Assembly: GCF_902652985.1 (NCBI RefSeq) | Contig: NC_047031.1 | Span: forward strand, 29,140,001 to 29,204,000 | DNA: 64,000 nucleotides | From: Pecten maximus | Taxonomy: Eukaryota | Reading direction: 5' to 3' | Shown here: piece by piece, positions 38,118 through 57,941 of the stretch | How positions within the stretch are numbered: position 1 is the stretch's first letter | Layout: each line of letters opens with the position of its first letter | The notes under the pieces: model-generated | What the model was told of the DNA's origin: nothing | Databases searched by the model: none | Seen by the model: only the letters and a program-made list of their open reading frames with translations | Made by a program: the position numbers and the translations under genes

Positions 38118-39496
38118 ATGGGAAACAAGCACTCCTGCGACGTACATCTTAAGCATAGCAGTCAACGTGATCGGGACGTCTGCATTCAGTTTGTATACAG
38201 TAGTAGATGACTGTCACTTAACCATTGCCCTTTCCCCTAGTTGACCAGGTTGTGATGTTTAGTAGAAACTACATATCAAAACAAATTGTCTATTTTGATT
38301 CCTAACAATATAAATCCTGATAATAGTTTAAATTCAAAAATGTCAATTAGAATTATGATTGGTTTATGGTAAAGCAGTAAAGGAGGCCTTTTCACCACCA
38401 CCGTCTGTCTATTTTAAAAACTGTAACTTTTAAAATGTCCAAACATTAAAGCATTCTTAATTTAATTTGTATTCAGTGTGTCTTTTGAACAGAACAACCC
38501 TTTGAGTTTGCTTGTGGTATATACTGCTGTTCGATTTTTGCAGTCCGATGAGGTCTATCTTGACATTCTTGTCCCGATTAATACATTTGAATAGTGACGC
38601 AATTCAGTTTACAAACTTAACGATTTGAAATCAAATCATAAATATGACTGAAATCCTATATTGAAAATTGCCAAATTTAAAACCAAATGGGTCTCTCACA
38701 CCTCGCAATCCTGGTTTTGACATTTGATGACCTATTTCACGTCGCCTTTTATTAACACTTTAAACCCTAAGCATTACTGGCGAGTCGTTGAAGAACGATT
38801 TCGATATGTCCAGCCACAGAGGAATATCTTTTCATTTATGTTTGATGTGATGTGTATGTTTATTTAGAGATAGAACATTTACAGAAAGGTTCTTAATTAA
38901 CTCTTTACATTTGTTTTGACTTGGTTTAAGTAAAATATTTCGTTTCAGACAAAGAAAATCAAAGGAGGAAATAAGAGAGTTAAAACAGCGTTACGAGGTA
39001 AGTCATCAATATATCAGCATTTTAATTATATATACCGGTACGTATGCCTATATTTCTACTTTAGGAACATTAGGCCTTATTTTATTGGTCTTTGTTTAAG
39101 CTTTATTGTGAATCTATTGTTTTGCGTGATATTGTTTCCATTTGTTGTTCCGCATGACTTGTTCAGTGATGCCAATAATGATGGTAAAATAGTATACAGT
39201 TGATAGAAGAACTATAACACATTTTAATGATTTTATTTCAGCAATATATATGCCAATACGGACATAAACATTCGTCATGGCAGGACTGGAAAGAATGTGA
39301 AGAAATGTAAGTTTAGATGTTTTTACACGTTCAAAATTGATCGATTAATATTCAGAGATATTTGCACGATGTAAAAAATCAATTCGCGATTTCTACTTAT
39401 ATTCAATTACATGTAGTGATGTGTATATGTGTGTCAAAGTTTGGCCTCGCAATATGGAAAATCATCATCAAGTCATTATCCTCATCTGCAATAATC

Positions 39497-39527
<31 letters not shown>

Positions 39528-39602
39528 AACATCAATCCTCCTCCTCCTCCTCCTAATCATCATCATCATCATTCAATCACCATCATCCTCACCACCACCA
39601 TC

Positions 39603-39639
<37 letters not shown>

Positions 39640-42600
39640 AGTGTCATTTCGTATAATAAGATTATCGCAATGTGCTTAATAACATACAAAAAAACTAAAA
39701 CAAAAAAAAATAGTTGAGAAGTATTGTCAAGATTTGGGTGTTGTCTGTAAAAGTTTATCCCATTTTTTCCATCTATTATGAAATGTTTCTATATTTCCCT
39801 TATCTTTACCAATAAAAACATATTTTTGAATATTGTAATTATCTCTAATAGTAAGTTTCAGTGCTTGTACTGATAGAATTTGTTGTAAACATCTTGTTCT
39901 ATTGATGTACTGCTTCATAATGAGTAATACACGATTATCTGTTTTATAATATACATTTTTCTTGTTTCTCATGCCAAAAATGAAAGTTTCTTTATTGAAA
40001 GTAAATGGAATCAACAGCGTATCTAGCAAAAATTCAAAGTTATCAAAAATCACTGTACTTCTTCGCATTCCCATAATAGATGTACAATTGTTTCTGATTC
40101 TATTTTACAGAAGAAGCAGATTGGACTACCAGTCAATCCGATTTTGAATAAATATGAATTAGTGGTTAATATGAATGAAGGCAAAGCCTTGGAAGAGCAC
40201 AGCTAATCTAATTGTCACTTGTATACGTGTATATATGTTTATGTAATATATATGTAAATCTTTTCATTATATTAGCAGATTTATGAAAATCACAAGGCAC
40301 TGATAAGTCATCAAAAGGCCTTATTATATATAACAAGAATTATACAGAATTATATATCTCATTTTTCCCGCTTTATCAATAACATCTTTCAATTTATGGA
40401 GTAGTGTTCAAGTAATTAAATAATATCAGTAACCAGTGTTCAGCGAGACATTGAGATAGGGTGAAAACTGAACTCTAATGAAAATTCTCAAAATTCAGTT
40501 TTGAGGCCAAAATATGTGAATCTGTAAAGACATTTAAGTTTCAATTAGATTAATATTGCTTTTATAACACAGTTTATAGTGAATCTGAACATAACTTCAC
40601 AAAATTCCCTGTTAGTATTTTTATTTTACCCAAAAATAGGTGAACCTGGAAAAAAATCCTCTAAATGATGGATAGGTGCATGTACAGTATAGGTGCATGT
40701 ACAACAGTATAGGTGCATGTACAACAGTACACTGTATATATATCAGTACCCTCACCAGTTTCAATTCAATCTAGATCTGACAGCATGCAACTCAATAACA
40801 CTGTCAAATGTGGACTTTAAACAAATATTGACGCCACTGCTATTAAATATTTGTAGTGATGGTTGTAAACTCGCTTTTATTTGATAAATTAATTGAACAA
40901 ATTAAATAAGGCCAAAAAGTGTGATTTCTGTATATGAATTAAATAATTATTTCTATAACCCATCCCTATAGGGTAATAGAACAGGATACCCTGTGGTAAA
41001 AAAAAAAAAAATCTAATATTTTGAAAAGTACCTTAATCAAGTCTCTTTCATCCATGAAGGATGTTTGATTTCTTCATATCTGGAAGTTTAGAAGTTTCGT
41101 CAATTTTACGCTTTTTGGTCCCACTACTCAGGCCACTGTGGATCAGTCATAGTGCCAATATATATATATACATATACATATTTAATCGATTCACAAAGTT
41201 TCTACAAGTTTTATTCTACATATATGTATATACACATGTACATAAATATATAAACATATACTATTGCACAGATATCCCATTCTGATACTTATATTAAAGT
41301 TTGTGTTATTTCCAATAGCAATATTCAATATAATTTCTGTTTTTGTATTGAGTTAACTAATAACACGGGTCCCCTCATCTTAAAAAAACCAAACTACAGA
41401 CCCGAGGTGCATTAAATTATATCAATTTTAAAGGACTTGAATTGAAGATCCTTCTACCATGTGTAATATTTGATTCTACCATATATTTGGAATGGAATAT
41501 AGAACATTTTGAACTGTTATTCAGTCACTTCAACTCATTTTTGGGCAAGACCGCTTTGGACGAGGACATGTACTTATATTTATAACATATGATTTGAAGA
41601 TCTGTTTATAGAGAACTTTTAAAAGAAATTCACTTAACAGTTAACATTGTGAGCTTTTAAAAATAAAATATGAATCAACTTTGGGATTACATCAGTATAT
41701 AATTATAATGTTCTGTCAATTTTGTAATATCTGGTTGAAAGTTTAAATTTAGTTATTTATGTCAAAGTTTTTCGAGTTGTCAAACTTTGAATTATCTTAT
41801 ATATATTTTATTACTATAAAAACAAAGATTTTGACTTGGACCAGTGAGATACTTTAATTTATAATCAGTGTTTTTGAGTTATCATAGTTCGAGATAATTA
41901 ATTTTGATTGTAAGTACATGTATTCTCTTGTCTCCACTAAAACAGAATTTGTAGCAAATTTAAGTTAAACCTACTAAGAGTCAACACCATAGACAATTAC
42001 TCTCCTTTTGTAATTATGATTAATTACAAAATAATTATAGAAATTCTATAATCTTCTAGGCTTTGGAAATTAACAGCAGTTGTTTATAAGGTTTAAATCA
42101 TATTACACTGTACATTTACATGTGTTCATAAACATTGTAATACATTTGGTTTAAATTTGGTTTACTTCATTTAAAGGGTGATTCCATCATTAGTTTAAAT
42201 TCAAAGGTTAGGTCATCAAAATTAAACTTATTGGAAAATATGATTTTTTCCCAAATAGTAAATCTTCGAATCTTTAATTTACATAAATCAAACAGTTTGA
42301 CTCGCAGGGTAATTAACACAAGTTCTCCAAATTCTAAGTCCTAAAATTCTTTATTCCTACCAAAATATCACTTTTTACTTGAAAGCCAGTCAGTATTTTT
42401 GTAGGATTCATCATTTTTCTGTACATTTTGGCATTGATTTATTTCCCTGTTCAAAAGTGGATTTCATCAGTAAAAAATGTACATGGTTCTGATATCTGAA
42501 AGAAGGAATGTCCCTCTAAATTGAGTCTCATTATATAATTAACAGCCAGGGTCATTTAAGAACATGCCAGGCATTGGAGAAGTGTTGGAAATTCAAACAC

Positions 42601-45600
42601 CTAATTAGAACACACACAATGAAACAGTCCTTGTATGTTTTGACATTGAGTACAAAAGATTGTTTTAAATTTCCTTTTTATTAATTTCAGGCAATATTTT
42701 GTGAAATAAACAGTTACTATACTTAGCAATAGAAATCTGATCTATAATACTCTCAACAGTATAATATGACAATTATTTCATAAACATTGCAAAGAATTAT
42801 TTTTCAGATAAATTTCATTTAAAATTCAATCATTATTCTTGGTACAACCTACATATGTGCCATGTTGATCTATGTTTATTTCTGCTGACTAATGTAGACT
42901 AACTACACATGTACTAAGCCTGCATTTCATAGATGATGAAAAAATATAGGGTTATCACATGGGCTTTATATACTATACTAGAATCTAGACTCGGGCATTT
43001 TAAATGGTTACTAGCCCCATGTGCTGTAATATAACCTTCTAATTATAATAAACAATGCGAGTCAGACACATCGTATCATCTGTAACTAACAATAAAAAAG
43101 CTGGGACGTAACCGATAGGCACTTGTTTCCTATGCATATGCCTAGCCTAGTTGTCTTTCGGCATGTTATTGTTTACAATGTAAATCAAGTGCCTGTCATA
43201 AGCCTAACGTTAACGCTGAGAAAATAAATCGACAAGGCGGCCTAAATATTTACGATAGAATCGATCATAACACAGTGTTATCGGCAAATGCCTACCTTTG
43301 ATCAGATCAGACTGGAACCACATACAAAATTAATTACAAGGACCCTATACTGAGTTTAATTCCAACGTATTCGCATGTCTTGTTGTGTACAATGTATCTA
43401 AGTTTTTATTAAACCAGATGAGTGTTTTCATTATTGAAAAATTCATATTCACTGAAAAAGTCTCTTCTTTCTCTTTAAGGCATCCCCTGGATTTGAACAC
43501 ATCTTTTCAAAATTTGTTTTTGCATTTCATTTCACATTTTCTTATGTATCCACAATTAGCTAACATACCTATATCAATACTTCTGCCTAAGATTAGTTGC
43601 CATTTACTTGCTTTAGAGTATAACCTTCTAATCTATGATAATTTTAGCGCCTTTATAAAAGATTATATATCAAGCATTTTCAAACCCCCTTTCTGTATAG
43701 TCTTTTATAATAATGTCCCTTTTCACCTTATCTACTTTACTATAAAAATGTGGTTAAATTGTGATACCAAAAGAGATTTAATAATATGTATTTTACCAAT
43801 AGGAGTAAGCATCCTTTTATTCCAATTATTCAAAAGAGATTTAAGTTTAACCAATTTCTTGTCAAAGTTCATTTTAGTCATTTTATGTAAATCTATATGG
43901 AAGTCAATACCCAATATGTTAGATTATTGGTTTCCCCAACGTTGGTTCCATTCTGGGCAAAATTGTTCTTCACTATATTTCATGCTACCTATCCATATTA
44001 CTTCTGTCTTGCTTTTACTTATTTTTAACCCAGATATATCTGCATATCCTTTTAACTCATCCAATGTCTCTCTAAATGAATTTCTAGATCCATCAAGGAT
44101 ACCTGAGGTTTCATCTGCATATTGAGATAACAGTAATGGAGTATCTTCTATATTTATTCCTTTAATATTATCATTATTTCTTATTCTAATTGCTAGGACT
44201 TCAGCACATAAAATGAATAAATATGGAGATATAGGGTCACCTTGTCGACATCCACGTTTAATATAAAAAAATGAAGATAAATTGCCCCCCTGATTAACAG
44301 ATGAATTTGAACCATTTTGAAACATATGAACCCAGTTCTTTATATGTTCCCCAAAGTTAAAAAAACAAGCACTTTATCAATAAAATCCCAATTAACCGAG
44401 TCAAAGGCTTTTTCAAAATCTTTTGTAATATTCCAGGAATGTCATTCTCTTCTGCATAGTGCATAATATCATATAACTCTAGTGTTTTCACTTACATACC
44501 TACCTGAAATAAAACCAGACTGATCAGTATTGATAAGTTTATCTAATACTTTTCTTATTCTATTTGCAATTGAACCTGAAGCAATTTTATAAATTGTATT
44601 CAGAAGTGAAATGGGTCTCCAATTCTTCAAGTATTGTCTTGACTTATCTCCCTTTGGTAACCATGTTATGATTCCCGGTTTTTGTGTAACAGATACATTT
44701 TAATATCAAATCCATATTGAATTGATCTAACTACAAAATGACCTAATTGTTTCCAAAAACATTTAAATAATTCTACTGTGAAGCCATCAGATCCTGGACT
44801 TTATTATTTTTCATATTTTTTAGAGTTTGAGATGCTTCACTTAAAGTAATGTTACCCTCTAAACTGTTTGTTTCTATAAAATTGAATTTTGATGTATTAT
44901 TTACATTAAGATATTCATTCAAATTTATATTTTGCAATAATTGGAAATTATTGTCTTCTGAATACAATCTTTCATAATATTTCTGCACTTCATTTCATCT
45001 TGATTCATGATTATTTCTCCATCATCTTTTTCTATGACTGGTATAATTTTTGTAACGAAATTCCTATTTTCTAAATTGAAAAAATACCTGGTAGGTTTTT
45101 CAACTTCTTCAACTCATTTTACTTTAGACCTCAAAATGTTCCCTTTAAGCTTATACTTTCTAATTGATTCTAATTCTTTTTGGCAGGCCTCTAATTCTTC
45201 TAAATTTTACCTCCTCTTGAGCTTCTATTTTTATAATTTTTACCTCAGATGTTGCTCTTGATTATTTCTTTTGTTTTTTCTTAAAAGACGCATATGAAAT
45301 GGCTTTCCCTCTAATTTCTTAAAAGAGTTGATCATTTATTGTAAACTGAATATCTTGGTTTGGAATATCATCTAAACTATTCAGATTATAGATAGGCACA
45401 ACATATTGTGCTTTTACATCTAGAATATGTTTATTAATTAATTTCAAATAATCATGAAGTAAGGAATTGTTGAATTTCCATAGCCCTTTGCCTTTCTTGT
45501 ATTCATTAAATTTTAGTGTAATACATGGAATGGAGTGATCAGATCTATAGCCTGGGTCAATATTTGCTTTTTGTATACAAGATAAAAGGTTCTCAGAAAT

Positions 45601-48600
45601 TAAAAAAAAGTCTAATCTTGCTTTATTGGACTTCTTCTCCTCCATGTGTATCTTTTACTATCTGGGTGGTGTTCTCTATATATGTCAATAAGCTCCAGTT
45701 CCTCTATTATTTCAATAACTCTTTCTCTCGCTCTAGGGTTGTTAACTTGCCTATAATTATCACAGTCCAAATCAGGATTCAATACTAAATTAAAATCTCC
45801 ACAGATAATAAATGAATCATTATTGAACTCTGATATAGTATCTACAACCTTATCATAAAAAATAAGTGTATCTAAATTTAGGCCATATATAGTAACAAGG
45901 GTAAATCTCTTTTCATCTGTGATAATATCTAGCGCTAAACAATTGCCATCTGGACTTTTCTTTTCTTTTATAACTTCAAAATTATTATTGAGTAAGATTG
46001 CACCCCCCTTGAATTAGAGTTAAAAGAACTAAAGTAACAGGAGTAGCCCCATTCTGCTCTAATAATATTTTCTTGTATCTTGTCTTGTATACAATAAATA
46101 TTAAAGTTCATGTCCCTCTATTATGCGAATACATCCTTACGTTTATTTCTATCATCCAACCCTTGACAATTAGCAGTTAGAATTCGGATTCCTTCCATAA
46201 TAGGTTCCACATGGTGACAGAGTGTATATTGATATTGCTGGCACTGCTTACCGGTCTGATACTTGATAATAGTCAGAAATCAGGAATATTTAACTTCTGC
46301 CAGTGATAATCCATATTTGAAGCCTTGCATCAAATCCGCATTTAAGACGTGTTGTGTAGCAATAATCGTAAATTCTGACGGTACTCTATAATTACGTGTC
46401 TATAAAAAAGCCTATCTAACCATGGCTCGGTTTGTGAGTTTTCCCGAATAAATTTAGGAGACAGAATATTACATTTCTGTTGTATTTGATCAAATTTTGA
46501 TACAACCGTTACCCTCATAATACCATAAAAATTGCCGCAGACAAATGACCAAGATATTCTAAACATATAAAACAACCCATAGTCTATTCTGATTCCTCGC
46601 ATCATTGTTTTCGGTTATCTAAAAAGAGAAACCGGGAGATTACTTTTAGCTGTCACTTTTTCGATTTTAAATTTCTTTAGTTCACTTATAGCAAATAATT
46701 TGAAATCATCTTTAAAAAACGAACAACACTCAATTCAATCTGCAATAAGTAAATGCTGCGTTCCGATTGCGACAATGTCGCATTCGTCCTTCTGTAGACA
46801 ATTCTTTCAGAAACGTCGCATTTATTTATATAAAAGAATGTAAAACAGGCCCAGAGTATTATTAATTGGGATTTGTCGTCCTCTTATCAATTAAGATCGT
46901 ACCTTGGGGCCAACGACTGACGCTTTGAGTATCATCACATTGTTACAATCAACCTCGGACACCGTCTGCACCTTATCTTAGTCGTGTTGTGAATGTAAAA
47001 CCCCCAGTAAACGAATTTAAAAAAAATTGCATTCACTCTTCCATAGTGTTTTACGTTTACCTTTATATGCACTAGGCCTAATCGAAATGTTCTGTTTTAG
47101 GAGGAGTAGACAACATTGCGAAATAGAAGAGTTGAGACAGAAGGTATGATACAGTAGGAATCAATTCTTCATTAAGTTGTGTAACACCCGATGTTATCTG
47201 ATAAAGAATCTGTCATTATTCCTATAGATTTGTACTGTAACCATCTTTATCTGTCCCAAGTAAAGTAAGCTTCACCCTGAGAAGGTTTAGTTATGTTGAA
47301 TTTAAAGTCAATGCAATTTTCAATAAAATTCAGGCACAAAGTCAGAATAATTGTACGCAACATATAATTTCCTACTTGTGGAAATTTAGATATAGATCGA
47401 TTTCCATTTAATTTGGTAAAAGGAGGCGTTAGGGGACTGCAAGTTCAACTGTATGGGTCTTTTGTCTTAGGAACCACACATTCTTTTTATTGGTCGAAAC
47501 TTAGAAATATTGAGCGGTTTTGATGAAAACTGTTGAAACAGAGTTATCGCCCCTCACTACGCTTCATTCCTTCTGTGACATCCTTCAGGTGTCACCTCAC
47601 TAGTATTATACTCCTAATAGAAGGACTATAACGCATTTAAATGATTTTCTTTCAGCAACATATATGCCCGTACGGACATCACCATTCATCATGGAATGAC
47701 TCGAAGGAATGTACCGAAATGCAAGTTTAAATATTTTTACACGTTAAGATAGAAAAATATTCTGAGATATTTGCACGATGTAAAAAAGCAATTCGCGATT
47801 TCTATTTATATTCAATTAGTGATGTGCATATGTTTGTCAAAGTTTGGCTTCGCAATTCAAGATGGAAAATCCGAGGACAAAATGTCTGATACTTGATAAT
47901 AGCCAGAAATCAGGAATATTTAACTTTGCCAGTGATAATCCATATTTGAAGTCTTGCTTCAAATTCTGCAGCTAAATATGTGTTGTGTAGCAATAATCGT
48001 AAATTCTTCTGGTACCTATAATTACGTCTCTGCAAAAAGACTATCTAACAAGGCTCGGTTTGTGATTTTTCCCGAATGAATTTAGGAGACAGAATATTAC
48101 ATTTCTGTTGTATTTAATCAAATTTTGATACTACCGTTACCTTCACAATACCATAAAAATTGCCACAGACAAATGTTGGCGTTATAACCAAGATATTCTG
48201 TACATATAAAACAACCCATAGTCTATTCTGATTCCTCGCATCATTGTTTTCGGTTATCTAAAAAGAGAAACCGGGAGATTACTTTTAGCTGTCACTTTTT
48301 CGATTTTAAATTTCTTTAGTTCACTTACAGAAAATAATTTGAAATCATCTTTAAAAAAACGAACAACACTCAATTCAATCTGCAATAAGTAAATGCTGCG
48401 TTCCGATTGCGACAATGTCGCATTCGTCCTTCTGTAGACAATTTTTTCAGAAACGGCCCCTTTATTTATATAAAAGAATGTAAAACAGGCCCAGAGTATT
48501 TTTAATTGGGATTTGTCGTCCTCTAACCAATTAAGATCGTACCTTGGGGCCAACGACTGACGCTTTGAGTATCATCACATTGTTACAATCAACCTCGGAC

Positions 48601-51600
48601 ACCGTCTGCACCTTATCTTAGTCGTGTTGTGAATGTAAAACCCCCAGTAAACGAATTAAAAAAAATTGCATTCACTCTTCCATAGTGTTTTACGTTTAAT
48701 GTCATATGCACTAGGCCTAATCGAAATGTTCTGTTTCAGGAGGAGAAGCCATGATCTCAAAATGGAGGAGATGAGACTGAAGGTATGAAAGCAATCAATT
48801 CTTCATTTAGTTGTGTAACACCCGATGTTATCTGATAAAGAGTCTGTCATTATTCCTATAGATTTGTACTGTAACCATCTTTAACTGTCCCAAGTAAAGT
48901 AAGCTTCACCCTGAGAAGGTTTAGTTATGTTGAATTTAAAGTCAATGCAATTTTCAATGAAATTCAGGCACAAAGTCAGAATAATTGTACGCAACATATA
49001 ATTTCCTACTTGTGGAAATTTAGATATAGATCGATTCCCATTTAATTTGGTAAAAGGAGGCGTTAGGGGACTGCAAGTTCAACTGTATGGGTCTTTTGTC
49101 TTAGGAACCACACATTCTTTTTATTGGTCGAAACTTAGAAATATTGAGCGGTTTTGATGAAAACTGCTGAAACAGAGTTATCGCCCCTCACTACGCTTAA
49201 TTCCTTCGGTGACATCCTTCAGGTGTCACCTCACTAGTATTATACGGTTAATAGAAGGACTATAACGCATTTAAATGATTTACTTTCAGAATAATAAATG
49301 CCAATTCGGACATCACCATTCGTCATGGAATGACTTGAAGGAATGTGAAGAAATGCAAGTTTAAATATTTTTACACGTAAAAATAGATAAATATTCAGAG
49401 ATATTTGCACCATGTAAAAAATCAATTCGCGATTTCTATTTATATTCAATTAGTAATGTGCATATGTGTGTCAAAGTTTGGCTTCGAAATTCAAGATGGA
49501 AAATCCGAGGACAAAATGTCTGATACTTGATAATAGCCAGAAATCAGGAATATTTAACTTTGCCAGTGATAATCCATATTTGAAGCCTTGCTTCAAATTC
49601 CGCAGTTAAATGTGTGTTTTGTTGCAATAATCGTAAATTCTTCTGGTACTTTATAATTACGTCTCTGCAAAAAGACTATCTAACAAGGCTCGGTTTATGA
49701 TTTTTCCAGAATAAATTTAGGAGACAGAATATTACATTTCTGTTGTATTTAATCAAATTTTGATACTACCGTTACCTTCACAATACCATAAAAATTGCCG
49801 CAGACAAATGACCAAGATATTCTAAACATATAAAACAACCCATAGTCTATTCTGATTCCTCGCATCATTGTTTTCGGTTATCTAAAAAGAGAAACCGGGA
49901 GATTACTTTTAGCTGTCACTTTTTCGATTTTAAATTTCTTTAGTTCACTTATAGCAAATAATTTGAAATCATCTTTAAAAAACGAACAACACTCAATTCA
50001 ATCTGCAATAAGTAAATGCTGCGTTCCGATTGCGACAATGTCGCATTCGTCCTTCTGTAGACAATTCTTTCAGAAACGTCGCATTTATTTATATAAAAGA
50101 ATGTAAAACAGGCCCAGAGTATTATTAATTGGGATTTGTCGTCCTCTTATCAATTAAGATCGTACCTTGGGGCCAACGACTGACGCTTTGAGTATCATCA
50201 CATTGTTACAATCAACCTCGGACACCGTCTGCACCTTATCTTAGTCGTGTTGTGAATGTAAAACCCCCAGTAAACGAATTTAAAAAAAATTGCATTCACT
50301 CTTCCATAGTGTTTTACGTTTACCTTTATATGCACTAGGCCTAATCGAAATGTTCTGTTTTAGGAGGAGTAGACAACATTGCGAAATAGAAGAGTTGAGA
50401 CAGAAGGTATGATACAGTAGCAATCAATTCTTCATTAAGTTGTGTTACACCCGATGTTATCTGATAAAGAATCTGTCATTATTCCTATAGATTTGTACTG
50501 TAACCATCTTTATCTGTCCCAAGTAAAGTAAGCTTCACCCTGATGAGGATCAGTTATGTTGAATTTAAAGTCAATGCAATTTTCAATAAACTTCAGGCAC
50601 AAAGTCAGAATAATTGTACGCAACATATAATTTCCTACTTATTAATATATCCCCACAATCTCATCGAAATTAATCTACATGTGATTTTGACCTTTAACAG
50701 TACTAAATACCCTCACGCAATCCAACATACAGCTATATGGTCGCAAAACGCACCAAAAGCAAATCTACGAAGCGCGCGTCTCGCACATTTGTGCGGGTTA
50801 AGATCGGTTCATCATATTACTAAATGACAAAATGCGGAAAATGTCAACAAATCTCCATTCATCTAATTTTTCATGGAAAAAAATAACAATGACAAGCTCG
50901 TATGGATCAGTCTTGTTCTATGTTTTCTGTTGCAGAGGACGTACACATGTAGTCTCGGTCATTCACACAGCAGTGTGGAAGAGCTTAACGCTTGTCACAA
51001 TAAGTAAGTGACAGCAAAATTGTAACTTTCTACCTCAGTTATCTCCAATACTGTTAATCGTTTAATTGATATTAATGATCGGAGGGACCATCGATTATTT
51101 TACATGTATCAAAACACAACTGGAATCTGCATTTTTCTTTAATATCCATTTTGATACATTGAAATGCATGTATTCGAATATGAATGCTATTACCTATATT
51201 GCCATTTGTATCTTTCCACAGCAAGCTGCAATCTGAATATCTCGAACGCTTTGCCAAATTGCCGAGGTATGCACGATCACTCCATACAAATAAATCACTC
51301 CCAACTATTAAGGTTATTATCAATCCATGTTGCTGTAGCAACTGAAATTTAATCTCTCGCGTCTTAAGATATCTTATATTTAAAGTTAATTTAGAGAAAA
51401 ATAATTAGGATAAAAACATGTACTAGACACGGTCAGTTGATGCTTACGATTATATCTACATTTCTGTTTTTCCCCTTGCAGTGGTGATGTCGCCAAAGGT
51501 AAGACTGCATCTCATTCTTAGTTTTTAGGTTCAGTTTTCAATACGTTTAGAATAGTACTATGAATCTAAAAACAAGATAATAATTTGAAATCTTTACAGT

Positions 51601-51701
51601 TTGTTTTATTATGCCAATTTGTAATGATAATGGTTTTTTTTATAGGTTTCCCGGCACTTCTTCCTGCCAAAACAAGGTATTTGATAGAGTACCCTAAATA
51701 A
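38118..51701 (+). CDS. Uncharacterised ~194-aa micro-exon-encoded repeat protein: N-terminal MGNKHS plus five C-x2-G-H-x-H-S-S-x2-[DE]-x3-C motifs with charged helical linkers
   Basis: Exons 38118-38188, 38949-38997, 39242-39306, 47101-47143, 47656-47720, 48740-48782, 49290-49354, 50364-50406, 50936-51003, 51482-51498, 51646-51701. All have pyrimidine-rich AG acceptors, compatible phases and no stops. Donors are GT except GC at 47721 and 49355. The last exon is uncertain (possible donor at 51677 to an exon near 53064-53125). Confidence 0.72.
39490..39640. repeat. Compound microsatellite (ATC)n/(CTC)n/(ACC)n/(AG)n
   Basis: Directly visible. Confidence 0.95.
39700..40078 (-). mobile_element. 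3' end of an L1/Tx1-type ORF2
   Basis: ORF 39727-40074 ...LLIMKQYINRTRC...FHNRWKKW, typical of a Tx1 C-terminus. Confidence 0.7.
40111..40147 (+). CDS. Candidate alternative terminal exon of the same gene (IRSRLDYQSIRF*; 73-aa two-motif isoform)
   Basis: tattttacag acceptor, phase 2 matching exon 39242-39306, RSR start like the linker exons, aataaa overlapping the stop. Confidence 0.45.
43440..46197 (-). mobile_element. L1/Tx1-type LINE ORF2 (APE endonuclease + RT), heavily disabled
   Basis: MEGIRILTANCQGL start at 46197, ICGDFN, RLDFFL...SDH, KNWRPISLLN, GCRQGDPISPYLF, SQYADET. Confidence 0.9.
46255..50640 (+). repeat. ~1.63-kb tandem repeat, ~2.7 units, each full unit carrying two coding micro-exons
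   Basis: tctgatacttgataatag at 46255, 47885 and 49519; homologous segment also at 39219-39460. Confidence 0.95.
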
Positions 51702-54700
51702 GACGAGGATTCGGACCGAGTACATTAACGCCAAAAATTCAATGGATCTGCTTTCACACTCTCACAGGATTTTCACTTTGCGCAAACCCTTTGGTAAACA
51801 AACCGTTTGGAGATATCGAAATTTTTTCAAACATATTCTAAAAACAAATGACGTTGCCAAGGCACTTGATATTTATTTTAACCCCAGGATCACGTACGCA
51901 CGATCACCTTTCTGTCTTTCACAATATACATTTTCGTTTTCCCGCATGATATAAATCCAATTTGAATAACTTAGCAAATCTCAGTCTAGGTGAATTTATT
52001 TCAACATTTATAGCGTGACATTTTTAATTCTAATTAAAGTAGTGCATTTGGAATTTGTTGTATTGTTTTGTCTTTTTTGTTATTCAATAAAAAAAACCCA
52101 GAAAAGTTGACCATTATGTTATTCCAAGTGACCATGTGAGCATTAAAACATCAATTACAAAATTTGGAAGATTATAGTGAGAAGCAGATCAACAGATTAC
52201 TATAGGAACCACGGAACCAAATGATTTCCCATAGACGATAATGTTATCGTTTACCAATGTGCTGCTTAAATGGAGTTTTCAAAATTGGCCCACTAGCCAT
52301 AATTGTGAAGAATGTAATCTCGGAAACCAATTTAAACTTTTTTTATGTGGGGGTCCACATCTTGTATTGAATTCAGCACCAAAAATTCACCTAAATTTAC
52401 AACAAAATACACACTTAATCAACTCCCCCTGACAAAAACAGGCTAGAAAAAAACAACTTTTTTTCTATATATTTTACATCTACATGTATTGCCCAGCCCA
52501 CACATAAAACTTTGGAAACTTCTCCCACCTAAATATCCTATCAGTAGGCCCCGATGCATTGACCTTGTCCAAACAGGGAAAACTCACAATTTATTAATGC
52601 AGTATTACTCAAAATCTGACCAGTTTCTGCAAGAGCTGTATCGTCGCAAACTGAAAAGCTAGACTAAATTAAAGAACAGGAAATTTCCATGACGCGATGT
52701 ATCTTTGACCAATAACTCTGTTAACAAAACAAAATGGCAGATGCAATAACTGTGAGCGTGGTAAGAAACTGTTTTTTAAGGATTTTAGACCAAATTACAT
52801 TGCAGATAAGCAAAAGCTTTTAAATTGTCATTATATAGGCACAACTATCCAGAGATTATTTGGTGATAAATTTTCATGGCGTTCACTTATAAAAACCCAA
52901 CTGAAATATGCCATAGTCATTTCAATGAAGCCGAGAAAAAGCTTCAATTTGACTCCAAAAGATATGCAACTCTATACCATTATTGTGCTGACTGTTTTTT
53001 ATTAGATGTATAAATTATGCTATATGCCTATCATGTTTGCCGTATTATGATTGGTCTAGACAGGTCTTGCAGATGGAGAATACAAAAAGATGATGTTTTG
53101 ACCAGCGTTGAGTGAGGGTATATACGGATGAAATAGGTCATCGACTTTGAGACTAAATAAATAAGTGTTTTGGGGGTAAATATATATCTCATTTATCCAT
53201 ATATATATATCTAAGAGTAGGTGTTGTGTCACTCCCGATTTTATTGTATTTGCACCAAAATCCTACCGAGACACCAAACGGTGTCGGATAATTCCACGTT
53301 TTCATATAGTAATGCACTCTGGCCCTACAGCAGACATGATGTCAGGGCCAGAGGGTACTCGGGTTACTGTCTGGCTTGGTTAGTTACGTTTTGCCTTTTT
53401 TGGCGGTTTACAAGATATCGTTCGGAAAAATAAAAGATTGAAAAGAAATGACACTTATTTCAACTTTGAGGTCAAGGCACACACTACACATTGTTTCGTT
53501 TATGTATTTCATTGTTTTCAACATTTTCTCCTTAGTACGAGAGGCGATGTTAAAGTTTACAGACGGAAAATCTTCCTTGAGATCAGCTTTAACCTGCATT
53601 TGCATATAGTGGTACTATTCGTTTAGCTGGTTATGTAGAATATCATGAAAGGGGAACAACTCCGTGACAATATTAAGAATTAAATCAAGTGTGCATGCAG
53701 TTTCCAAACCTGACTGGGACAGTACGGCGTTTTTCATTTTTTCCCCATTTTAACAAACAGGCAGGGCCTAAATAAATTCTCTCCATATTATAGGTGGACA
53801 AATAGTGAAAAAGTGGAAAATTTAATTCGGATAATTGAAATCGAGTTATATATACTTACAATTAACAAACAGCAAATTTATACATATTGAGAGGGAGATA
53901 AATCTTATGCATGTATCTAATTAATTTTGGACATACAAATACAGATACACATACAAACAAAACGTACATTTGTATTTATAAGGTATGAGAGATTAAATTA
54001 GCACATAGCAACATAATTATATGTATGTAATAGTAGCATAGTTATTCAGTAAACAGTTTGGTAGATAGACCAAATGACCGTATGCAAACTTTTGCATAAG
54101 TCATATCTACCAAGCTGTGTTTTTAGAGTAAAAAATTCACTACATCATACATGTACCTGTAATCATAAAAGAAATAGGGAAATACTGCATGAATGATACA
54201 TTGAAATGTACATAGAGGAAAATTAAAACAATATGAGGTGATAATCAATTTCTAAATATATTTGATATAATGACATCATGTAATTTTGTATTTTATAAAA
54301 GTTGAAACGATTTGATTTACCTATATAATAATGAATCTGGTGTAGCATCAGTTTATTTGTATTTCCATCACAGCTCGAGCATCCATTTACTAGGGTTTCC
54401 ATAGAAGTATGATTATTGTTAGTAACACAGTTATCAAGAAAGTTAAAAAGATTATTACGCAGGTCATTGTATAGTGGGCATTCTTGAAAAAATGGCGTTT
54501 TACTAAGGGAAATACAATGAAACGGGTACTTGTATGCCTATGGTGACTGAATACGGTTTTCCCATGTGGGAAAGACGACATTTAATCTATCAAATCTTGA
54601 GTCGTCGTGGTCTGAGCACGCGCGAACGCAACAAGACAAAAAGGCGCTTACACGTCAACACGACATGACCGGAACAAACCATCATTTGTATGACGCTAAA

Positions 54701-55134
54701 AATAAAGTTACTTGCAAGCAAATGTGTCGAAAAAGATTTAAAAGTTATGCTTAATAAAAACGTTTGATGAGTTATTTGACTACATAAAATAAATATAACT
54801 GTTTCGGAGTGAACCAACGACACAGTAAACAGAATAACCCCCAAGAAAAAAAATCAAAATTATAAATTACAAGAATAAAACAAGTTAACAACTTCAGAAG
54901 TCATGTGATGCAGCCATGGAAACATAATAAATTATACGAAATTATAATCTTTAACTGAGTTGATGACTGCACACACCTGCTCACAGACGTATTTGACCTT
55001 TCACCCTAGATTACGTATCGATGAGTACCTGGAGTATAGCATAAGGTAAGGGCGACACACACCTGTCGTTTGGACGGTTTTAGTGATGTTGACATCACAG
55101 GAGTATTTAATCTGAAGTGACAGAAAAAAGGATA

Positions 55135-57941
55135 ATGAACATTATTTTACCAGAAAATATGAGAATGATCATCGACAGTTTGACTTCCATTTTACTCATC
55201 AATATTGCGTGTTACACTTGTCAAGGTAGGTCCTTTTTTAAATTGTGCCTTCCGATGGAACATTGCAAAGGTTATTTTACATTAAGGATTGAAGCAAGGG
55301 TACATGTGCAGAGGTGTGACATAAATGAGTTCGTAACGTTCAAATGTACTATGAATTATCAGTATTTTGTCTTAATTCAGGAATGGATTATGTAACGAAT
55401 TTGATGTGTTTTAAAAGAAATCTAGTTTCCTCACGTTATTAAAAGGACTGCCCAATATAATGCTAATTTAAAACAAAATCAAAGTGATACCGTGGTTTTT
55501 TATACCCTTATTTAAAGTAAATAGCGTTCCAAAAGAAAATAATGTTGTAAATGATGTTTATTTTTTAAGTGAATGAGGAATTTTTATTGAAAACAGCATG
55601 AAAATTAACTTTAAACCAATATCTTTAAGCTTGCAAAGGTTTCCTATCAATGAATCCAGAAAAAAATCATTGAAATATGTTTCTACTCTAAGATAACAGT
55701 ATGGTAGAATTTAATACGAACTGAAATCACTTTTGACATGCTATTAAAGATATACAATAATAATTTATCTATTCTAGACTTTGGTGCATTTTTATTCAAT
55801 TAATCTTAACTACAAACCATGTCTTATTATCAGAATGATTTATTTGATGTAAAAATGTACTTTTGGTTAATTTTGTATGGGAATGCATAGTTTAATCGTT
55901 TTGTCTACCAATAATACAATTAAAAGGTTATAAAGGTTTGAAGCTTGCCAATGTTGCTTGATTTGGCGAAAACAAATATTTTGATTGTTTTGTTATTTTA
56001 GACGTTTTACAAAATGGTCCAATGTCACACAATGGAAATCTGTTCAAAGATTTGAATGAGAATACAGGTAACAACATAAATGGAATGCCAGCATACATCC
56101 CACGAGGAAACATGGCGGCCATGACCGGATATGGACAGAATTGTCCCCTTTTACAAGGAATGACAATCCAGAACGCACAATCCAGTTCAATTCAATTCGG
56201 AATAAATCCAATTCGACCTTTTATGGGTAATTCACATTAACTCTTGTGGTTTAAAGGATTTTATTTAACGATTTTTGCAAAATAAAATATATGATCTTTG
56301 TTGAACATGTTTGTGATAGTTATATTTGAATACTTCTGATGATACGTGATTTTGAAATCGTGCTTATTTTATGTAATGTTCAATTTGTTCGATATGCAAC
56401 AAAGTTAGGTTTAGAAATTTGCAATATTGAAATGAAGCGTTACCAAAATTAAGGCAGGCATCCGTTGTATTTGTTTATGGTTCTTCAAATTTAGCATTTA
56501 TGACGTTAGTGTGATGACGTTGTGTTATTTACAGGCATACCTTCCGGTTGTAGCTGTACACTGACCGTCAATATGAGAGGGTGTTTCATCTGTCCTTGCG
56601 GAAATAACGGTACGATATCTACTTTTGCAATCTGTAGATTTACCAAATATATTTATCAAATGATAATAATAGTAATTTCAAAAAAAAAAATAAAAAAAAA
56701 TATATATATATATTATTGCGTTTGTGTTGGTGACAGTGTTTCCAATATCGCTCCTTCATTTCACGAGCATTCCATATTGTAAATATCATATCTTAACGGT
56801 ACCTTTATTTTAATATGTCGTGCTGAATTATGATTGCGCTATGTACACGTTTTCTATATCAAATAATAATGGTGCGCTAATTAATCCTTGCATTAGTAAT
56901 CAGTTAAAATGATAAAGTGCTGAAGTAACTACATGAACAGTTGTTTGAATCATGGTGGAAACATTAAACCTAATATTGAACTGTAAAATTTGCATGCTAA
57001 AGTGCTGAAATAACTGCATGAACAGTTGTTTGAAACGTGGTGGAAACAATAAACTTAAATTGAACTGTAAAATTTGCATGTTAAAGTGCTGAAATAACTA
57101 CAGGAACAGTTGTTTGAAACATGGTGGAAACATTAAACCTTATACTGAACTGTAAAATTTGCAGTCATATCTACTTTAACCTTAATCGTTCTGTTTATCA
57201 GAGACGCCGATTCCGACCACTGATCGAGGGACATTAACAACTCCTACCACGAAGGTTATACAAACCGGAAGTCCTCGCTCTACCTCAGCTAGACAATCAC
57301 ATTATCAGACGTCTGGATTGTCATCTGCACTCCTCGGAAAGGTTAATGAGGAGAGACAGCCAGGTATGAACTGGAATCACGAGAACAATGTGCTTTATGG
57401 TGAAAACAAAGAACTAAAAAGTACACAAATCTCTTCATTAATGAGCGAAAAGATTGTGACAGGTCAAATTTTAGAATCTGATAAAAGTATAAAGTTAAAG
57501 AATTTATCAGACACTGAAACCTCATTTGGGAATTTCTCGTCGTTGCAACATCAGACCCGGAATGTAGAAGATTTATCCAGTGAAAGAAGCTTCCCGTTTG
57601 CTGTTTCTCTTGGAAGTTTATTTCTTCTGACATGCGCAGTGTGTTGTGTGCTGGCATACCTGTTGTTTAAGACAAGGAAACACATAAAACACCAACGGAA
57701 CGAGTTGTACTTCGTCGAAAAGTCGTTCAGGCAATCAATATCATCAAATGACGATAGCATGAAAAGTGCAGATGAGATTATATATTCTCTGATCGGAAAA
57801 CGGAAACCGCCTGTTTTACCCGCACGGTCACCTCCTCTGACGCCTACAGCGCCACCTGTTTCTTCGGCGACATCTTCCGGTCAAACTTGCTTTAGTTTCC
57901 CGCCTGATGATCTTAGACATGACTATTTGGAACTGATATGA
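55135..57941 (+). CDS. Single-pass type I membrane protein (~370 aa): signal peptide, N/G/M-rich region, small Cys module, T/P-rich stalk, TM, Tyr- and Pro-motif tail
   Basis: Exons 55135 (or 55159)-55225, 56002-56226, 56535-56609, 57202-57941; all phase-1 GT-AG introns, open frame; TM FPFAVSLGSLFLLTCAVCCVLAYLLF followed by KTRK. Confidence 0.8.
56913..57163 (+). repeat. Intronic ~85-bp tandem repeat x3
   Basis: taaagtgctgaa.taact at 56913, 56998 and 57082. Confidence 0.9.

Follow-up and report, generated by a model that had tools for sequence, protein, structure and literature searches.

Few signatures of adaptive protein change can be recognised within a single genome. Exons that outpace their own introns are among them, and are known mainly from secreted toxins and from recognition proteins. 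A tandem array in the scallop Pecten maximus raises the question of whether such a signature exists between the repeats of one gene, and what causes it. The original prediction, made from the DNA letters, was that the exons of 1.63-kb tandem units at 46255-50640 have diverged much faster than the introns around them, either by diversifying selection on the repeats or because gene conversion homogenises the introns while exon variants are retained. We analysed the 64,000-nt window that holds the array (NC_047031.1, positions 29,140,001 to 29,204,000 of the forward strand; coordinates below count from its first letter), in which the gene is LOC117315924. The best explanation, to which we give a probability of about one half, is an expressed micro-exon gene in which exchange between units homogenises the introns and selection keeps the repeat exons different. 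The exon-intron pattern suggests selection for differing repeat copies, without proving it.

The tandem units were borne out by self-BLAST, which resolves an array of 2.7 units of ~1.63 kb: 46254-49011 aligns to 47884-50640 at 93.7% identity and 46254-47377 to 49518-50640 at 96.8%. The units are as follows, together with the transposon fragment that separates the linker-exon part of a unit from its motif-exon part.

46254..47883, + strand: tandem unit U1 (self-BLAST, MAFFT).
47884..49517, + strand: tandem unit U2 (self-BLAST, MAFFT).
49518..50640, + strand: partial unit U3 (self-BLAST, MAFFT), its end coinciding exactly with the start of the transposon fragment in the other two units.
47378..47606, + strand: 5'-truncated 3' end of a dispersed repeat in U1, 229 nt, with >40 genomic copies at 87-94% identity.
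49012..49240, + strand: the same transposon fragment in U2, differing from the U1 copy at 4/229 positions.

Other genomic copies of the fragment reach further 5', the DNA word depth over it is in the tens of thousands, and an Rfam search with it gave no match. The transposon end adjoins the motif part in U1, in U2 and in C3979, an unplaced contig with a diverged second copy of the locus, but not at the oldest motif exon copy (X0). The origin of the array is thereby partly resolved, with the truncated transposon end as the junction between successive units. The gene has expanded through tandem duplication of the 1.63-kb unit, each added repeat bringing a 43-nt linker exon and a 65-nt motif exon (36 codons).

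All four predicted exons are real. RNA contigs splice the linker and motif exon pairs into the LOC117315924 mRNA, with joints exactly where the prediction had placed the exon borders: 47143/47656 and 48782/49290 are GT-AG and 47720/48740 is GC-AG. Further joints connect 49354 to a linker, 50406 to 50936 and 51003 to 51222, and all of these match with zero mismatches. The RNA-backed exons measure 43, 65, 43, 65, 43, 68, 45 and 15-17 nt, and most of the coding sequence lies in exons of at most 81 nt. At 43 and 65 nt the repeat exons are not individually multiples of three, so the frame is kept only by pairs (108 nt, or 36 codons). The annotated protein of 104 aa agrees with the exon structure of the RNA contigs. 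The exon map is given below.

38118..38199, + strand: putative exon 1, from translation (start codon, MGN..S and a first, degenerate Cys/His motif); its 3' end (38199) is placed by frame only.
38948..38997, + strand: putative older linker exon of 50 nt, from AG/GT borders and frame, with the E-I-x-E-L-x-Q core common to the other linkers.
39242..39306, + strand: putative motif exon X0, the oldest copy, with a GT donor (motif scan and alignment; 82% identity to the motif part of U1).
47101..47143, + strand: linker exon L1, 43 nt, identical to L3 (RNA joint 47143/47656, GT-AG).
47656..47720, + strand: motif exon X1, 65 nt, with a GC donor (RNA joints 47143/47656 and 47720/48740).
48740..48782, + strand: linker exon L2 (RNA joints), with 8 lineage-specific substitutions, 7 of them amino-acid-changing.
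49290..49354, + strand: motif exon X2, 65 nt, with a GC donor (RNA joints 48782/49290 and 49354/linker), found in XP_033726241.1.
50364..50406, + strand: linker exon L3, identical to L1 (RNA joint 50406/50936; alignment).
50936..51003, + strand: last motif exon, Z, 68 nt (RNA joints; BLASTP against P0002, the Argopecten homologue, in which this repeat type is best kept).
51222..51266, + strand: exon of 45 nt (RNA joints 51003/51222 and 51266/micro-exon).
51482..51498, + strand: micro-exon of 15-17 nt, its border ambiguous by AG (15 letters between the sides of the RNA joint 51266/51644).
51646..51701, + strand: coding part of the terminal exon, with a TAA stop at 51699-51701; the RNA contig continues unspliced, and the C-terminus matches the retrieved protein P0001.

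Between U1 and U2 the linker exons differ at 11/43 positions and the motif exons at 12/65 (19-26% of bases), exactly as had been counted by hand. Outside the exons the transposon fragment differs at 4/229 positions and the remaining intron at 62/1283, so that 23/108 exon positions stand against 66/1512 non-exon positions (4.4%, the predicted few percent; Fisher p=3e-9). The codon alignment agrees with the prediction in containing no indels or stops and in sparing the C, G-H, H-S-S and C residues. With 8 transitions and 15 transversions among the exon differences, CpG decay is an unlikely cause and was rejected. Among all 43-nt windows of the unit the linker exon diverges most, but an intronic patch at 46304-46340 is nearly as divergent (9-10/43), a caveat of the kind that the original prediction had named as a refutation. 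A second intronic patch at 46527-46560 carries an 11-nt indel, and substitutions are clustered throughout the unit, 53/89 having a neighbour within 3 nt compared with 25 expected.

Such clustering is what a neutral mosaic would leave, in which patchy conversion between old units or haplotypes combines with clustered multi-nucleotide mutations, and two of four or five divergent islands overlap exons by chance. This account survives best among the alternatives, and we consider it somewhat unlikely. It is favoured by the intronic islands at 46304-46440 and 46527-46560, whose variants C3979 shares in different groupings. The position of the exons is harder to reconcile with chance: at least 11 differences occur in only 1.5% of 43-nt windows and at least 12 in only 4.6% of 65-nt windows, and when both exon masks are shifted jointly around the unit, both counts reach the observed values in 6/1620 shifts, all near zero.

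The predicted predominance of amino-acid-changing differences was recovered: 19.5 nonsynonymous differences separate U1 and U2, about five times the 3.9 that the intron rate predicts (p=3e-8). For synonymous differences the count is 2 when only clean ones are taken and 3.5 by path averaging, again above the intron expectation of 0.72, which would fit exons merely older than homogenised introns, and together with a dN/dS near 1 is in line with the neutral mosaic. Overall dN/dS is 1.05 (linker 2.05, motif 0.67), and with only 16.5 synonymous sites this ratio does not separate positive selection from a lack of constraint. The conserved scaffold residues nevertheless argue that the exons are not unconstrained, and 11/21 motif residues are invariant across four copies.

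Polarisation against C3979 places 8/11 linker differences on U2 alone. These account for 8/23 U2-specific changes in the Y part of the unit (p=9e-6), or 8 changes in a 43-nt exon compared with 15 in 828 intron positions on the U2 branch (p about 2e-6), and all four that can be aligned to the older linker exon are derived in comparison with it as well. The exon changes are thus lineage-specific and absent from C3979, unlike the changes in the intronic islands, which counts against the neutral mosaic, although the U2-specific changes also include a cluster of 4 in 5 nt located 40 nt upstream of the linker exon. An ectopic donor for the U2 linker exon was rejected: the window, C3979 and the 918-Mb genome assembly all lack one, and the exon's 12-mers occur nowhere else in the window or C3979 save for one chance match. 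The motif pattern is restricted to LOC117315924 and C3979, and a search with the Argopecten protein found no further locus.

The same excess appears in independent comparisons of other exons between the window and C3979, where exons differ by 9.7% and non-exon sequence by 5.9%. In 6/6 pairings of four copies the motif exon exceeds its flanks in divergence, and sites that are multiply hit or incompatible with the tree are concentrated in it (7/18 compared with 1/34 in the flank, p=0.0015); this concentration, like the excess against C3979, is difficult for the neutral mosaic. Only two exon comparisons are independent. Diversifying selection, the first of the two causes originally proposed, thus has in its favour the nonsynonymous excess, the burst in the U2 linker and the recurrent hits in the motif exon, and against it the overall dN/dS, the intronic patch and the clustering of substitutions; it is unproven.

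The second proposed cause was gene conversion acting on introns. Sequence continues to pass between the units, through gene conversion or unequal exchange, and most of the intron is thereby held at 95-100% identity. U3 is itself a mosaic, U2-like over its first (5') 270 nt and then identical to U1 over 651 columns (p<5e-5), and site patterns switch along the unit so that the four copies group differently by position; over-long identity tracts and mosaic relationships of this kind are those of concerted evolution. L1 and L3 are identical and lie within the 651-column tract, so conversion crosses exons as well. The tracts and groupings thus support this second cause too, but homogenisation does not stop at exons, as this linker exon shows, and as the cause of the pattern it is unproven. 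The identity of L1 and L3 also counts against the best explanation, given that not every repeat has been kept different.

The exon variants could instead descend from an old duplication, each being required, with overwriting conversion tracts purged and no ongoing adaptive change. X1 and X2 differ by 18.5%, on par with X0-X1 and X0-X2 (17-20%), whereas their flanks differ by 6.9%, half of the 13-14% seen in the pairs with X0. Old exons would also agree with a synonymous divergence of ~0.25, with the evident conversion tracts and with one other individual in which three clustered intronic bases, 42 nt upstream of X1, are in the U2 state and the exon is unchanged. We nevertheless find this account doubtful: conversion of a linker exon was tolerated in L1 and L3, and the U2 linker changes, being derived in comparison with C3979 and with the older linker exon alike, point to a burst on one branch and not to a symmetric old divergence.

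An artefact of assembly or annotation (collapsed or chimeric units, false exons), conceivable in a repetitive array whose RefSeq model covers just the 3' half of the gene, is effectively refuted, because RNA contigs match every exon with zero mismatches and canonical junctions, and the U1- and U2-specific segments recur letter for letter in DNA contigs of two other individuals, which carry both motif-exon variants unchanged.

Under the preferred combination of exchange and selection, exon codons outside the scaffold would gain amino-acid differences, or keep them, at four to six times the pace of the intron. The likeliest cause would be selection that favours mutually different repeats, or that removes conversions erasing their differences, and the metal-ligand-like Cys/His scaffold would stay under purifying selection.

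The predicted full-length protein contains five copies of the motif C-x2-G-H-x-H-S-S-x6-C with charged helical linkers between them. Full-length relatives were retrieved by a profile of six motif exon peptides, and among 1.84 billion representative proteins the only clear one is XP_069102811.1 (P0002), an uncharacterized protein of Argopecten irradians. It shares with the Pecten protein the MGN..SC start (encoded in Pecten by putative exon 1), repeated T-Y-x-C-x2-G-H-x-H-S-S-x6-C motifs and charged linkers, but it has four repeats and not five, is 37-40% identical, which fits fast protein evolution, and lacks the Trp-containing repeat type that is duplicated in Pecten. A word search with P0002 found only itself. 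The gene is scallop-restricted, expressed and of the micro-exon type.

In Pfam, the exon peptides, P0001 and P0002 matched no family, with sub-threshold hits to TNFR_c6 and Evasin only, and neither a PDB sequence search nor an Atlas feature search gave a match. Structural neighbours in the Atlas reach TM <=0.33 and include zinc-finger arrays. A classical C2H2 zinc finger (PF00096) was rejected given the lack of a Pfam match and a spacing of C-x3-H-x-H-x8-C compared with C-x2-4-C...H-x3-5-H. The AlphaFold2 model of P0001 is of low confidence (mean pLDDT 58, too low to serve a fold search) and no more than hints that each repeat forms a short hairpin and then a long helix.

Read by eye, the N-terminus is MGN...S, of the myristoylation type (Met-Gly first, Ser/Thr at position 6), and a signal-peptide-like start is absent. 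The small product is probably N-myristoylated, and it looks intracellular and not like a classical surface recognition molecule. The suggested analogy to extracellular recognition proteins is consequently weak: with an MGN..S start, which the Argopecten homologue shares, the protein does not read as a secreted effector or recognition protein. As a tentative elaboration that we think unlikely as a whole, a membrane-anchored intracellular Cys/His-repeat protein specific to scallops may be engaged in an arms race, the opponent being perhaps a pathogen or a selfish element. Repeats would be added by tandem duplication, with their number varying between haplotypes, and exposed residues would be driven apart as conversion keeps introns and splicing signals uniform.

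The abalone egg receptor VERL is another molluscan gene in which tandem repeats are homogenised by exchange while particular repeats diverge, as in the scallop gene. There, however, each repeat is a large extracellular ZP-N domain for which the sperm ligand is known, and whole repeats are homogenised, not just introns.

Exons outpacing introns are thus a pattern of known kind, here in an uncharacterised scallop gene, and by divergence (23/108 compared with 66/1512; exon above flank in 6/6 pairings) the gene belongs with accelerated-exon genes of the venom phospholipase A2 (PLA2)/conotoxin type. In snake-venom PLA2 and three-finger toxin genes, introns are far more conserved than coding exons and segments are switched ('ASSET'; PMC7285919). 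KA in them is about equal to or above KS, compared with a ratio of 1.05 on 16.5 synonymous sites in the scallop repeats. As in the scallop repeats, non-structural residues change on a retained cysteine scaffold; the U2 linker resembles a switched short exon segment. The venom copies are separate genes, whereas the scallop copies are repeats within one gene, represented by two exon pairs only with a dN/dS not significantly above 1, and their protein is not secreted-looking and has no indicated toxin function. Conotoxin genes, also molluscan, likewise set conserved introns beside very divergent short cysteine-framework exons, in their case the hyperdivergent mature-peptide exon (PMC3862624), but they encode secreted venom peptides in multigene superfamilies, unlike the single scallop locus, whose repeats are internal and whose protein has a myristoylation-type motif at its N-terminus. 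Schistosome micro-exon genes share very short coding exons (15-68 nt in the scallop), long introns and fast-evolving proteins (PMC4350168; bioRxiv 10.1101/2023.06.21.545858), but without sequence similarity, and their exons are individually symmetric and their products secreted, whereas the scallop exons are in frame only as pairs.

What sets the scallop gene apart from the known cases is that its protein appears, from its N-terminal sequence, to be intracellular and lipid-anchored, and that the pattern lies within the repeats of one gene, which allows selection to be set against gene conversion over distances of a few hundred bases. Because the evidence rests on few sites, it is for now a good candidate for population-level tests and not a demonstrated case. 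The map also corrects the public annotation, in which the existing model holds only the 3' half of LOC117315924. Repeat number is five on the chromosome and three on C3979, which points to variation in repeat number between haplotypes.

The window is part of the chromosome-scale contig C17 (29,140,001-29,204,000), and its self-comparison resolves an array of 1.63-kb tandem units in which U1 is about 93.5% identical to U2 and 96.8% to U3.

Tandem units and transposon fragments (window positions)
46254-47883, tandem unit U1
47884-49517, tandem unit U2
49518-50640, tandem unit U3, partial
47378-47606, transposon fragment (unit positions 1125-1353)
49012-49240, transposon fragment, U2 copy, which forms a unit junction as 47378-47606 does

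The exons of the units differ far more than the introns between them (Fisher p=3e-9 for exon versus non-exon differences), a result that rests on two independent exon comparisons with few synonymous sites. This was the original observation, and its hand counts for both exons were exact on recount.

Differences between U1 and U2
Linker exon, 11/43
Motif exon, 12/65
Transposon fragment, 4/229
Remaining intron, 62/1283

Because the substitutions cluster (of 89, 53 lie within 3 nt of another, where chance predicts 25), we added position controls. The motif exon ranks among the most divergent 4.6% of 65-nt windows of the unit, only 1.5% of 43-nt windows reach 11 differences, and joint rotation of both exon masks gives both counts at or above those observed at 6 of 1620 positions. 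One refuting condition named beforehand, equally divergent patches within the intron, applies in part, given 9-10 differences per 43 nt at 46304-46340 and an 11-nt indel at 46527-46560. Among all 43-nt windows of the unit, the linker exon diverges most. Motif exons X1 (47656-47720) and X2 (49290-49354) are unaltered in DNA contigs from two further individuals. Many inter-unit differences are blocks of 3-5 adjacent bases (47612-47614, 46377-46379, 47060-47064, 47713-47715), the first of them polymorphic en bloc in another individual, which suggests multi-nucleotide mutation or micro-conversion at the locus.

Splicing was assessed from Logan contigs (not reads) of one RNA data set, placed on 46200-51700. 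RNA runs X7 and X8 are filed under different studies, have identical contig counts, depths and joints, and were treated as one source; they are probably a single data set deposited twice. A 246-nt contig runs in the order linker exon, X1, L2 (48740-48782), X2, linker exon, and its junctions confirm to the base the four exons first proposed.

Joints in the 246-nt RNA contig
47143/47656, GT-AG
47720/48740, GC-AG
48782/49290, GT-AG
49354/linker exon

The GC-AG intron 47721-48739 is thereby confirmed. GC donors (AT/GCAAGT) lie at 47720/47721, at 49354/49355 and in the motif copy of C3979, an unplaced contig with a second version of the locus, unlike the oldest motif copy X0, which has a GT donor at 39306/39307. 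A 534-nt RNA contig leads from a linker exon to 50936-51003 (the last motif exon, Z), 51222-51266, a 15-nt micro-exon and the terminal exon, from about 51644. The linker-to-50936 joint is ambiguous, given that L1 (47101-47143) equals L3 (50364-50406), and reads as L3-Z or L1-Z; under the latter, two 108-nt exon pairs would be left out with the frame kept, and the transcript may be an isoform of lower repeat number.

Further exons
38118-38199, putative upstream exon 1
38948-38997, putative upstream exon (older linker exon)
39242-39306, putative upstream exon (X0)
51482-51498, micro-exon, 15-17 nt (15 letters between both sides of one RNA joint)

All three putative exons are predicted from reading frame and splice signals. 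Further support comes from XP_069102811.1, the homologue in Argopecten irradians (213 aa), whose MGN..SC start is that of putative exon 1. A six-motif-peptide profile searched against 1.84 billion proteins retrieved XP_033726241.1, 'uncharacterized protein LOC117315924 [Pecten maximus]' (104 aa), which begins at an internal Met of L2 and continues exactly through X2, L3, Z and the tail. Hence, the public model covers just the 3' half of the gene (span 38118-51701) and does not include the putative first exon, with its myristoylation-type motif, or three repeats that lie upstream.

Homogenisation of the units is clear. U1 and U3 share an identical run of 651 alignment columns (46519-47157, p<5e-5), and since this run spans the linker exon, conversion crosses exons. 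The first 270 nt of U3 resemble U2, and a distinct linker exon is found in U2 only. At informative sites the grouping of the four copies shifts along the unit. Diversifying selection, or gene conversion that homogenises introns while exon variants persist, had been proposed; both find support here, neither conclusively. By the Nei-Gojobori method, U1 versus U2 gives dN 0.26, dS 0.25 and an omega of 1.05 over few synonymous sites, with 2.05 for the linker and 0.67 for the motif exon. Nonsynonymous differences number 19.5 against 3.9 expected at the intron rate (about five-fold, p=3e-8), and synonymous differences 2 counted cleanly or 3.5 by path averaging, against 0.72. As both classes are in excess, adaptive change and old unhomogenised exon variants are inseparable in these data. 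We give a probability of about one half to a combined process in which exchange would hold introns alike while selection would favour or protect differences at non-scaffold residues. A neutral mosaic appears rather unlikely.

C3979 (38.4 kb), reverse-colinear with window 4797-60743 (85-99% identity), probably represents the other haplotype, uncollapsed, very divergent and with a different repeat number, or possibly a paralogous copy. C3979-type bases at 47964/47967/47972 and past the L3 donor occur exactly in one other individual's contigs, so this sequence type is present in the population. The contig carries a single X-Y-Z arrangement (a motif exon, a linker exon and the last motif exon). 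It has one repeat unit and three Cys/His motifs versus five in the window, with a 569-nt insertion on the upstream side of its motif exon, and it lacks the equivalent of window 51431-54788, where the gene's last two exons sit.

Polarised by C3979, 8 of the 11 linker differences are U2-specific (7 amino-acid-changing) and 3 are common to U1 and U3 (all amino-acid-changing). Among 871 aligned columns there are 23 U2-specific changes, 8 of them within the 43-nt linker exon (p=9e-6), which holds 1 of 50 C3979-specific changes. Pure maintenance of old exon variants would account for the synonymous excess but seems unlikely, since with the older linker exon as reference 4/4 alignable U2 changes are derived in U2. 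No donor for the U2 linker exon was found in the window, C3979 or the P. maximus genome. Other exons tend to surpass their surroundings in the independent window-C3979 comparisons (pooled exons 23/238 versus nearby non-exon 75/1275, p=0.04).

Window versus C3979, exon differences and nearby non-exon divergence
L3, 4/43, 5.8%
Z, 7/68, 5.8%
Exon 51222-51266, 6/45, 4.4%
Exon 1 (putative), 6/82, 7.5%

Across the four copies of the motif exon (X0, X1, X2 and C3979), divergence is higher in the exon than in its ~190-nt flank in 6/6 copy pairs (12-20% versus 6-14%). The exon holds 4/5 multiply hit sites and 3/3 sites conflicting with the flank tree, together 7 of 18 variable sites versus 1 of 34 in the flank (p=0.0015). 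The 11 invariant residues of 21 include Cys, Gly-His, His-Ser-Ser, Trp and the second Cys.

The exon-faster-than-intron pattern is known in kind, here in an uncharacterised pectinid gene. Venom PLA2 genes are the classic case: their coding exons are less conserved than their introns, and KA roughly equals or exceeds KS. Short exon segments that 'switch' are the ASSET concept (both PMC7285919). Conotoxin genes have hyperdivergent exons next to conserved introns (PMC3862624). Those patterns lie between separate genes, whereas in the scallop the compared copies are repeats inside a single gene. Very small exons and rapid evolution are also features of schistosome micro-exon genes, but each of their exons is symmetric by itself and their products are secreted (PMC4350168).

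Pfam has no family and the PDB no relative for the protein, and structural neighbours in the Atlas are weak (TM <=0.33, C2H2 arrays). A low-confidence model (pLDDT 58) hints at a short hairpin, then a long helix, in each repeat. The gene is single-copy in the P. maximus assembly (918,306,378 bases, 3,983 contigs, searched genome-wide), and a search of 1.84 billion representatives gave just one clear relative, the Argopecten protein (37-40% identity). The Met-Gly-Asn...Ser start suggests N-myristoylation, which would argue against the extracellular role implied by the earlier analogy to recognition proteins.

The transposon fragment is the 5'-truncated 3' end (229 nt) of a dispersed repeat with >40 genomic copies (87-94% identity), and the fragment has no Rfam match; pairs of copies arranged tail to tail occur at some loci. 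U3 ends at the exact start point of the fragment, homology of the X0 copy (39190-39463) to the unit begins only where the fragment stops, and in C3979 the element's last 59 nt adjoin its single motif copy. In the simplest account, the element would have sat upstream of the motif exon, followed by tandem duplication of a segment that starts inside the element and takes in the whole linker-exon part as its end. This leaves the missing element of X0 unexplained. Long (CAT)n, (CCT)n and (GA)n microsatellites (39464-39640) start exactly at the limit of X0-unit homology, and beyond them ~6.8 kb of unrelated sequence separates the X0 copy from U1. Elsewhere, at 56909-57163, an 85-nt unit occurs three times in tandem (76-93% identical), as it does in C3979.
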